A DNA stretch of 64,000 nt from Phaeosaccion multiseriatum (lineage: Eukaryota; Protista; Ochrophyta, other classes): assembly GCA_965112735.1 (NCBI GenBank), contig OZ218960.1, positions 1,302,001 to 1,366,000 on the forward strand, written 5' to 3'. Position 1 is the stretch's first letter, and every line of letters begins with the position of its first letter. Below, one piece after another: positions 31,350 to 55,080 of the stretch. A model generated the notes under the pieces. That model did not search any database and was not told the origin of the DNA. It saw only the letters and a program-made list of their open reading frames with translations. A program made the translations under genes and the position numbers.

Positions 31350-31648
31350 TGAAGAACAAGAGGCACCAGAGCTCCCCACAAGAAGCACTGTGATCGGCTT
31401 GCAATGACGAGGAAGGTGTTTTGAGTGCTGCGCGTATGTCAACAGAAGGCAGGGCAGAGGGAGGCAGCCCTTCTGCTTCTCAATGTGGACTCCTCCACGG
31501 CAAGGTCATACAAAAATGAAGCTACGCTCTTTACTCATCTTTGTTATCCCGCTGGTCGATGACGAAACACGAGCCAAGAAGAGGTGCCTCGAGCAACAAA
31601 CCGCCCCCATAAGGTCTCACTACACGGTTACAAGCCCTCCGCTTTCGG

Positions 31649-34600
31649 TTACAAGCCCTCCGCTTTCTGCAAGGCTGTGCTGCCCGCGGCATGTCTAGAC
31701 CTTCGGGAAGCGGACCTTCTCCGAGCATGTCGCCTCCTCCTGTCGGCCGGGCTCAGATCCGCTTCGGAACTGTTGGTTGACAATCGCTGCTGCAGAACGG
31801 TCACTTTGAGCATGTTCTCCACATCGTCCAACGTCTCGTCGTCGTCGCTGCTGTCGAAGAAGGCTTCCCGTTCGTCACCGCGCCTCCTTCCCCTGGTCCT
31901 GCTGCTGGGGCTTCGCGGGGAAGCGACTCTATTACTACTAGCCTTGCAGGCCATTCTGTGCTTCCTATAGTCTTGCCTGCTTGTTGCGGCTTCCCCCTCC
32001 TCTACGTCGGCGTATACGGAGGCCCGCCCTCCTCTGCCTCCTGCTGCTGCTGCAGACGATGCGCCTCCTTTGCGCGCCGTCTCAGCTCCTCGATTGACGC
32101 TGGGCCGTGGTGATCTGCCAGAGAAGGCTCGTCCGTTACCGTCGCCGACACTTGGCACCACTCGAATGCGGCTGCTGCTGCCAGCAGTAGTCGCCGCCCC
32201 GCTTGGTACAGAACTTTTCGTACCACCAGCTCCGTGACTATCTCCTGCTGCCCCCGTACTGCTCTTCTCATCCGCCCGGCTGCGTCTACTTTTCGCTTTG
32301 GCCTGCTTGATCTTCTTCTCCTTCGCCAGATCCGCTCTTCGCTTGTCCACGCGGGTACTCATCAGATTCACGCTCAAGCGCACATTGACGATAAAAGTCC
32401 GATACCACAAAGTCCGCATGAGTTTCCGGGTAGGAGCGTACCTCTCGCGGTCCAAAAGCTGTACGCACATAAGGACACACACACACATACACACACGCAC
32501 ACACACATACACACGCACGCACGCACGCACGCACACACACACACACACACACACACATACACACGCAGAGGAGACGACGTCATTGGATTCTTCCGAAAAG
32601 GGGAGATGCAGAGCTTAGAGCAAGACAGTGCGACAACAGCGACGAGTAGCTAAGACGGACCTTTCGCTTCCTTTTCAGCTCAGCCTTTTGCTGGTCCTGC
32701 TTGGCCTGGTCAATCTTGTACGTGGGAGCACAACGAATAAAAACCTATACCCGTTCATGGGAAAGAGAGGAGGGGAGAAGAGGGGACCAGCAAGAGCAAG
32801 ACAGGCGTTGAGGAGATGAAGGTGGCCGTTGGGGCTGAGTCTAGGCACCCAGCAAGGCCAGCAGTAGCAGCAGCATGAGTAGCCAGGTTACGGAAACCGC
32901 CGAGGTCCCGAAGAAGCACTTCTCTCCTTGAACGCACCATAAGGGACCAGAAGGCCTGCCTGCCCGTCGTGAAGCCCATGTCCAAGTACAGCAGCATCAC
33001 TGGGAAGGAGTGGATGGGAGGGACGAGGGAGCGATTCATTTTGTGTGAGACTGACAAGGGCAAGCGAGTAGTGAAGAGTGCACACGCACACGCACACACG
33101 TACACACACGCACACGCGCACACGCACACACACGCACACACGCACACACACACACCCACTCATACACACATACACACACATACACACACATACACACGCA
33201 CACACACATACACACACATACACACATACACACGCACACACACACACACACACACACACACACACACTAACCGGTGATGGTCAAGGTCAGCATGCTCATG
33301 GAAATCATGAGAGCATATACTTCTGCGCTGAGGCTATCGTCAAACTGTGACGCGACGAGCAGCCCCAGCGTCATGCAGTTACACAACACGTAAAAGCCCT
33401 CCACGACGTTGGCCAGTAGGTTGTTAAAGGGTCCCACCACCGCGAGGGCCACAAGCTCTCCTAAGCCGCAAACCAAGAAGATGAAGGACGTTGCCTGCAA
33501 AAGCGATGAAGGGGGATGGAGGGCAAGGGCGGGTGGCAAGGTGAGAGCCACTCAGCGGCAGCGAGTACCGCCATGTCGAGGCGACTCTCCCCCTGCTGGC
33601 GCGCTGTCAGCAGCCAAGCAAACGCCAAGAAGCAGCGGAGGATTGTGGGCGCATGTCCTATCCTGTCGCCTGCCTGGCGTCCTTCCTCCCCTCTTACTCC
33701 TGCTTGTACGCCAATACAGTACCTTCGTTTCTCCCACTGCCCCCGCCACCACGCCCAGCACGAGGCCTTTGGCCAATATCACGAGAAGGTGCTTGCTTCC
33801 CTGTGAACACATCCACCAGGCGGACGGACGGACGGACGGACGGAAGCGCAACACAGACAGCACAAACGGGGTGAGGAGTCAATTCGTGGGATACCGCTTC
33901 ACTGAGGCCCTGAAGCCCTTCGCGCCCTCCAAGCCGAGCAAGCTCAAGCCATCTATGACGGACCTGTCGAGTGTACTCAGAGAAGAGGGGCTCGTAGCCA
34001 ATGCGCATGCGGCGTAAATTGATACGACTCGTTTCGTTCGCTTTGGTATGCCACTCCCCCCGCGCGGCCCTTGTACAATAGCCGGAAGATTGGCACCGAA
34101 GGAGGGCAACAGAAGCCACAGGCGAGGTGGGAGGGAAAATGATCGTCTCTTTAGACAGAGGGGTCGCAGATGAAGGGCCAAGCTGGTGATGGAACGATAG
34201 AGAGGGAGGGAGCGAGAGGACAGGACACAGCTGGGGAACGGACTTACCAGGTAAAGATGGATGTTCCTTCTTTCCATGCTCGCTTGAGCCCTCGCCATGC
34301 CCTCGTTCGAAGAGGCATGTTAAGACGCTGTTCCCAATTGAGAAATAGGGGTTGTTCAAGGGAGGAAGGTGGGGGGTGAGCGAGACAGAGACTCTCGCCT
34401 CTGCTGTCATGCTTCGCAGTCGACTGCCGTAGCTACGGAATGAATTTGTTCAGCAGGCGTTCCCATCCCCATGTCCCGCTCTTGCAGACGGACTCTCTTT
34501 GCTTGAACTCACTCACCACTTGGCGCTGGTACTCCTCGTAGTTGCGGTAGACGAGAGGAGCCGATTCGGCCACCACCTGCACAGGAGGAGAAGGGAAGGA

Positions 34601-54451: not shown

Positions 54452-55080
54452 TTGCTCAAAGCTGCTTGGCTAGTGTTTGATGATAGACAGTAGGCTTGAG
54501 GAGGAGTCCAACCAGAGGGGCAGAAGGGTGCCTCTGCCCTGTACAATGATGACATGAGCCTTGGGTACTTTATTTCATTCTCTCTCCCCTCGTCTCCTCG
54601 CCTCTTTTCATCTCGCCTTCCTCTCTTCTCACCTATCCTCTCCCATTCTCTCTGCCCCCCCCCCCCCCTCCGCCTCCTCTCGAGTCACTTTTCGCCGCTA
54701 ATTGTCCTTCTCTCCCGATCACAATGAAGTATGTCCGTGCCTCCCCTTTTTACGTGAAAGACCCCCAACAAGATGCCCGGGGAGGGAGCGTGGCGGGCTT
54801 TCTGGTTATTACCCCCCCTTGACGGTGGCAGCCCCAGCAGTGAGGCACAAGCCATCCTCGCCTCATCTCTTTTGCGCCCCAGACTGCTGCTGCTGCTGCT
54901 GTTTTTTGTTTTTGTTTTTTGGCACTGCCTCGGGCTTTCGCGCCAGTTCCATCACCTCAAATGGCGCGGTAGTGAAGAACCAACATAACAAATTGAGGAT
55001 CCGATGTACTTCAAAAAGGAGAAGAAGACGCAAGACAAAAACAAGGAAAAGAGAAGAAGTTTTTTTGTTTTCCTCAACTC

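Follow-up and report, generated by a model that had tools for sequence, protein, structure and literature searches.

The palindrome and its two gene copies

The stretch of Phaeosaccion multiseriatum DNA analyzed here, 64,000 nucleotides of contig OZ218960.1 (assembly GCA_965112735.1, positions 1,302,001 to 1,366,000) and called the window below, contains a palindrome of about 23 kb in which two copies of a receptor-like gene lie head to head. The structure had been described in an earlier note made from the sequence alone, and it was reproduced almost base for base by an inverted-repeat search, by blastn and by a global MAFFT alignment of arm A with the reverse complement of arm B. The inverted-repeat search returned arm pairs of 3370, 2993, 1364 and 1186 nt, 96-100% complementary, within 32.6-52.9 kb of the window. 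With blastn, a single alignment connects 32659-42648 with 52947-42985 (97.7% over 10025 columns), and an extra block of 94% identity pairs 32312-32453 with 53743-53884. The palindrome is real: a single receptor-like gene, rich in introns, has been duplicated in inverted, head-to-head orientation. The coordinates of its parts are collected in Table 1.

The two ATGs diverge from the spacer, at 42629 on the minus strand and at 43003 on the plus strand, each 14 bp inside its arm, and the spacer is the sole sequence that separates them. It is presumably the shared bidirectional promoter and 5' untranslated region of both copies, so that both genes would be driven from the same 345 bp. Small tandem duplications are visible within it at 42690-42790: GCACTAAT and GTTTCA are each present twice.

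The gene was modeled by ab initio exon-chaining dynamic programming with self-trained codon and splice-site scores, followed by hand curation from three-frame views and splice sites; the exons of copy A were then mapped from copy B through the arm alignment. The earlier note had placed a complete gene in each arm, and the model agrees with it, with 34 open exons per copy and one flaw. Neither copy has an internal stop, and copy A keeps all the splice sites of the copy B model but one: at the donor of intron 18, it has AT (38427) where copy B has GT (47206). Exon 18, of 72 nt, has phase 0 at both ends, hence its skipping preserves the frame, while retention of the 106-nt intron shifts it. The model is firm for the propeller exons, for the stalk and for the long last exon, whereas the membrane-region exons 21-33 are provisional. 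Exon 21 (48737-48992 in copy B, 36590-36845 in copy A) would encode a run of about 25 Gly/Ala and a stretch rich in Gly, Ser, Thr and Asn; it comes after the middle domain and ahead of the first strong membrane segment, and may be an intron instead. No further copy of the receptor gene was found elsewhere within the window.

Table 1. Position of the palindrome parts, gene copies, repeats and rate segments in the window.
Feature	Position	Strand	Content or partner	Source or remark
Arm A, high-identity part	32660-42643	-	gene copy A, from 14 bp 5' of the ATG to exon 33	blastn, MAFFT
Arm B, high-identity part	42989-52947	+	holds gene copy B	inverted-repeat search, blastn, MAFFT
Spacer, 345 bp, non-palindromic	42644-42988			arm identity drops to random level at 42644/42988
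Inner tract, arm A	39789-42643	-	partner 42989-45843	0 differences
Inner tract, arm B	42989-45843	+	exons 1-12 and beginning of exon 13 (signal peptide, blades 1-5)
Diverged middle tract, arm A	35272-39788	-	partner 45844-50322
Second near-identical tract, arm A	33318-35271	-	partner 50323-52277
(CA)n-type microsatellite, intron 31, copy A	33081-33267	-	partner 52327-52525	TRF; local difference hot spot, ~16%
Coding span, gene copy A	31649-42629	-	34 exons, 1603 aa	frame open
Coding span, gene copy B	43003-54451	+	34 GT-AG exons, 1551 aa
Stalk repeat array, copy A, (APTA)n	38002-38315	-	12-bp unit	TRF; alignment gap at 38005
Stalk repeat array, copy B, exon 19	47318-47571	+	12-bp unit	TRF
(GTCT)181 microsatellite, last intron, copy B	52982-53705	+	181 copies, 724 bp	TRF, 100% matches
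Last exon, copy A (cytoplasmic tail)	31649-32458	-	homologous to copy B tail	strongly diverged
Last exon, copy B (cytoplasmic tail)	53738-54451	+	homologous to copy A tail	strongly diverged
Segment, rate 0%	39805-42643			Poisson segmentation
Segment, rate 3.4%	37907-39804			Poisson segmentation
Segment, rate 1.4%	35268-37906			Poisson segmentation
Segment, rate 0.25%	33248-35267			Poisson segmentation
Segment, rate ~16%	microsatellite			Poisson segmentation
Segment, rate 3.6%	32660-33099			Poisson segmentation

Divergence along the arms

The arms differ at 149 events in all, and these are unevenly distributed. Next to the spacer, 2855 bp (974 bp of exon and 1881 bp of intron) are free of differences in the MAFFT alignment, the last difference being found at 39788/45844. 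The middle tract that follows contains 95 substitutions (64 transitions and 31 transversions) and seven indel events, 2.1% overall; one of these indels is a gain of 60 bp in arm A, corresponding to five 12-bp units (20 aa) by which the stalk array of copy A exceeds that of copy B. In the second near-identical tract, only four transitions are present in 1954 bp, with a perfect run of 1135 bp. From 32660 to 33317, the divergence is 6.3%, largely within the (CA)n microsatellite. High identity ends at 32660/52947, at the end of exon 33, where the arms adjoin the microsatellite intron. The last intron, the last exon and the 3' end are about 64% identical (31691-32569 vs. 53611-54418), an alignment for which sensitive settings are needed. 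An outermost weak block, 31436-31496 versus 54500-54555, is 70% identical over 61 bp and coincides with the outer limits, 31435 and 54556, that the earlier note had given to the palindrome.

The course of identity described in that note was recovered throughout: an inner ~2.85 kb that is identical with its introns included, scattered substitutions and indels at 35.3-39.8 kb, near identity again at ~33.3-35.3 kb, and a last intron, tail and 3' end that are strongly diverged yet alignable. Uniform divergence along the arms, which had been named there as an observation that would count against the proposed mosaic, is excluded by the run lengths as well as by a segmentation. When the differences were placed uniformly (20000 permutations), the median length of the longest identical run was 356 bp and no run was longer than 915 bp, to be compared with the observed runs of 2855 and 1135 bp. 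In a Poisson segmentation, five to six rate classes were favored by the Bayesian information criterion and a single rate was rejected; the arms contain four divergence classes or more. Four segments instead of one rate bring the log-likelihood from -774.6 to -675.6, a gain of 99 units.

Synonymous divergence (dS, by Nei-Gojobori) is 0 in the inner tract (324 codons), 0.033 in the middle tract (omega 0.40) and 0.008 in the near-identical block and the outer core. In the last exon, the first 45 codons give 0.18 and the remaining tail 0.81, the latter with an omega of ~0.53. The introns follow the exons: the inner tract has no difference at any of its 1881 intron and 974 exon positions, and divergence in the middle tract amounts to 2.39% for introns and 1.77% for exons. 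Because the introns match as fully as the exons, the identity of the arms results from homogenization, and selective constraint is ruled out as its source. At the protein level, the ectodomain and membrane parts of copies A and B are 98.1% identical.

The two last introns carry unlike microsatellites. In copy B, the (GTCT)181 array is perfectly pure, which suggests a very recent expansion; in copy A, only a short (GT)n is present, at 32475-32564 (ACAC on the plus strand). Beyond these introns, the last exons diverge by ~36% at the nucleotide level, and despite this, the reading frame and the shared motifs are kept in both. The encoded tails are 57% identical over the aligned residues: they have in common a juxtamembrane block of 45 residues and the islands SRVVP, RKGGAS, GGRGxRASxYxDVE, DEREAxF and TVLQ, together with one island of 11 residues. 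Judged from these residues, they are clearly tails of the same kind, as would be expected of a fast-evolving, disordered tail that retains short motifs, rather than of two different signaling modules. The proposal of the earlier note, that one sensor is coupled to two different intracellular outputs, is not supported by these common motifs, by the level of identity or by the omega value of the tail.

The encoded protein and the surroundings of the palindrome

The product consists of a signal-peptide-like N-terminus, seven blades, a stalk, a domain rich in N-glycosylation sites, a Gly/Ala-rich stretch, hydrophobic segments and a basic tail, in this order. C[WF]G occurs seven times, at residues 56, 123, 182, 242, 311, 366 and 429, in a context that fits an RCC1-like propeller of seven tandem repeats, each of about 50-65 aa with the signature G..H.C...G.V.CWG.N..GQLG; the repeat found here reads G..x.C......V.C[WF]G.N..GQLG, and the cysteine pair is present in all seven blades. 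The stalk, built of Ala, Pro and Thr, is 133 aa long in copy B (89% Ala + Pro + Thr) and 153 aa long in copy A. A segment of 179 aa contains seven N-x-S/T sites. At least seven hydrophobic segments are predicted from hydropathy, and the basic tail is of low complexity, rich in Ser, Arg and Lys.

On unspliced pieces, Pfam gave sub-threshold hits for RCC1_2 (E 0.0046, 0.015 and 0.18) and RCC1 (E 0.093); on single in-frame exons, it gave no match. In the PDB, the blade-7 exon best matches two CRINKLY4 ectodomains, PpCR4 (E 0.026) and ACR4 (E 0.073), and blade 7 aligns to six to seven CR4 blades with both cysteines in register. The label of RCC1/BLIP-II propeller given in the earlier note is reasonable, and it can be narrowed to a propeller of CRINKLY4-like type, each blade of which carries a cysteine pair. 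The CR4 ectodomain is a seven-bladed propeller with one disulfide per blade, and its nearest folds are BLIP-II and UVR8 (bioRxiv 10.1101/2020.08.10.245050). The algal protein shares with CRINKLY4 (ACR4/PpCR4) the extracellular seven-bladed RCC1/BLIP-II-like propeller, the cysteine pair in each blade and the motif G..x.C.......CWG. Outside the propeller, the two differ: CRINKLY4 continues with a TNFR-like cysteine-rich domain, a single-pass helix and a kinase, whereas the algal protein continues with a mucin-like stalk, the 179-aa domain, a series of seven or more hydrophobic segments and a tail that is basic and disordered. No piece of the receptor gene gave a Pfam match to a kinase or TNFR domain; as the algal protein is without a kinase, its likeness to CR4 is confined to the propeller.

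In the loop before blade 7, the two copies differ by four substitutions within 20 bp (39092-39111 in copy A, 46522-46541 in copy B), by which four residues are changed (PFGASSDGI vs. PLGANSNDI). This cluster could be the trace of a micro-conversion from a third paralogue or of local positive selection.

For the membrane part, the largest membrane exon (74 aa) resembles clusters carrying PF06011 in protein-language-model features (score 0.89; 198 of 256 features shared; 36 of 100 named matches). HMMER found no match to Pfam on any membrane exon, PF06011 included. The membrane part may be TRP/FLC-like, which is a weak lead. The fungal-type TRP/FLC/Pkd2 proteins (PF06011) also combine a signal peptide, an extracellular domain, a multipass membrane domain and a cytoplasmic tail; unlike them, the algal membrane exons are without a profile match in HMMER. 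The resemblance serves as a lead only. A metagenome scan with the 74-aa exon matched 374 patterns, none of which was confirmed. The largest exon of the gene, exon 20, was searched through its open frame (47885-48661) with phmmer against 1.84 billion representatives, and the sole match was a low-complexity one, to a protein of 3862 aa. AlphaFold2, run without an alignment, modeled the exon-20 domain with a pLDDT of 44, a value too low for fold comparison. The gene combines a CRINKLY4-like, disulfide-type propeller with a stalk of mucin-like composition and with a multipass membrane domain, and it may prove of more lasting interest than the palindrome that carries it.

The palindrome is flanked by two mutually unrelated open reading frames (ORFs), one with a DUF711 domain (29251-30981) and one with a RING finger (55457-56440). 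An ORF for a H+-translocating pyrophosphatase (26557-28401, minus strand) has its nearest relatives, with 62-64% identity, in Ectocarpus, Nannochloropsis, oomycetes and diatoms. The window also contains a short-chain dehydrogenase (12628-13485, plus strand), apparently of a single exon, and a strawberry-notch-type helicase (14532-21382, minus strand) with AAA_34 and SBNO domains. No Rfam family reached the gathering threshold anywhere in the window.

Origin of the mosaic and comparison with known systems

The pattern is probably that of an old inverted duplication whose arms have been homogenized repeatedly, in patches, by intrachromosomal arm-to-arm gene conversion. An old duplication homogenized in tracts was also the conclusion of the earlier note, and it is upheld by the dS values from the center to the tail (0, 0.033, 0.008, 0.18 and 0.81), together with introns that are equally homogenized. 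With a dS of 0-0.033 in the arms versus 0.81 in the unconverted tail, and with introns as alike as exons, the arms are far more similar than the age of the duplication would predict. The copies must have overwritten one another on several separate occasions, well after the duplication. That the duplication is old is evident from the last exons (dS ~0.8); its age exceeds that of the middle tract by a factor of at least 25.

Conversion could have proceeded as follows. A break in one arm would be mended with the other as template, the two being always close together because the spacer is only 345 bp long. Approximately 10 kb of each arm, those nearest to the center, would have been overwritten several times in this manner, in tracts of ~2-3 kb or more: the most recent event would be represented by the 2855 bp abutting the spacer, an earlier one by the block at 33.3-35.3 kb and older ones by the remainder. 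In the last intron, the unlike microsatellites would interrupt the homology and block conversion from entering the last exon. The observed position of the boundary, at this microsatellite intron, is what leads us to infer that the heterology halts conversion tracts and isolates the last exon. With conversion stopping there, the tails would drift apart, while the ectodomain and the membrane domain would evolve in concert.

Some observations weigh against this explanation, or limit it. The pattern is not a simple center-out gradient, as the 0.25% block lies outside the 1.4-3.4% block; at least one conversion tract must have begun away from the center. The comparison covers a single assembly, which gives neither the direction nor the number of the events, and the perfect identity of the inner tract is that of the assembly consensus. 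Finally, the provisional membrane exons affect dN/dS in their region, the nucleotide mosaic being unaffected.

The dependence on the consensus raises the question of an artefact: the palindrome itself, or at least the flawless match between its inner 2.85-kb tracts, could come from a fold-back chimeric read, from a join of two haplotypes or from polishing that was blind to the arms. Perfectly identical inverted repeats are indeed places where polishing errors arise. Such an origin is nevertheless quite improbable. A fold-back read would give identical arms and no spacer, whereas these arms differ at 149 events and enclose an asymmetric spacer of 345 bp, which rules out such a chimera. Alleles would share their flanks and be far closer to each other, but the flanks are unrelated beyond 31435/54556 and the tail dS is ~0.8; the joining of two haplotypes is ruled out as well. 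Two haplotypes joined by a fold-back chimera were an outcome that the earlier note had named as fatal to its reading, and this outcome fails on the flanks, the diverged tails and the spacer. Open frames and splice sites are retained in both copies, and the same polishing left adjacent tracts, at 1-3% divergence, unhomogenized. That polishing has inflated the identity of the inner tract keeps a low probability.

If the identity is real, the inner tract could alternatively reflect a recent re-copying of the palindrome center, in which a break in or near the spacer is followed by resection, intrastrand fold-back annealing and outward fill-in or break-induced synthesis. The perfect tract begins exactly at the boundary between arm and spacer and extends outward for 2855 bp, and long inverted repeats with a short spacer, such as the 345 bp found here, are a configuration prone to hairpin-associated breakage in yeast. 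The position of the tract does not tell the two apart, however, since arm-to-arm conversion of the innermost sequence would likewise have to stop where the spacer begins, and the 0.25% block at 33.3-35.3 kb, away from the center, implies that at least some of the events were interstitial conversions. A center-out origin is mechanistically plausible for the innermost tract but regarded as unlikely, and it fails to account for the interstitial 0.25% block.

A programmed system is very improbable. It would either use recombination between the inner arms to flip the spacer and switch promoter use, or generate receptor diversity by conversion. An asymmetric spacer is in fact placed between perfect inverted repeats of 2.85 kb that start 14 bp from each ATG, and the copies differ mainly in the tail, in the stalk length and in the cluster of four amino-acid changes in the blade-7 loop. 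Exchange between the identical inner arms would invert the spacer, and its orientation would decide which isoform (tail and stalk length) is favored, a scheme to which very little credence is given here. If true, it would be a eukaryotic flip-flop promoter switch, of which the central homogenization would be the footprint. Against this, no recombinase gene or specific site was seen near the locus, the neighbors being the DUF711 and RING-finger ORFs, the pyrophosphatase and the short-chain dehydrogenase, and both tails carry the same motifs. With only two copies, conversion lowers diversity: it removes differences rather than generating them. No positive evidence was obtained for the candidate diversification system of the earlier note.

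With repeated arm-to-arm gene conversion as the preferred explanation, the locus is a known process in a new place, a stramenopile alga. It represents a clean and small case, from neither an animal nor a plant, of concerted evolution within a palindrome. Conversion tracts of older and younger age adjoin one another, with a boundary at a microsatellite intron, which would make it convenient for studying how tracts start and stop once reads or further strains are at hand. It also shows a gene pair that keeps a common ectodomain and membrane core, the cytoplasmic tail alone being free to diverge.

Arm-to-arm conversion in palindromes has been amply documented on the mammalian X and Y and on a willow sex chromosome (PMC8600007, PMC8327919, PMC7023750, bioRxiv 10.1101/800185). 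Like the palindromes P1-P8 of the human and ape Y, those of the primate and mouse X and those of the willow W/Z, the algal palindrome has inverted arms of at least 10 kb with a gene copy in each and a unique spacer, and its near-identity extends over introns and exons, as expected from intrachromosomal conversion (PMC8600007, PMC8327919, PMC7023750). In comparison with them, its arms are at the small end of the range, and its spacer of 345 bp doubles as the sole intergenic and promoter region. The sex-chromosome arms are uniformly more than 99.9% identical, whereas the algal ones are patchy, with 0 to 3.4% divergence, and conversion has not reached their outermost kilobase at all. The algal locus belongs to a stramenopile, and nothing links it to a sex chromosome.

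Young, closely spaced inverted duplicates in nematode and human genomes reportedly undergo concerted evolution as well, with tracts that end where the homology breaks. The algal locus resembles them in being a close head-to-head pair with tracts ending at an interruption of homology. It differs from them in the unusually wide span of dS within one pair, from 0 to 0.8, and in the unusually sharp boundary at an intron filled with microsatellites.

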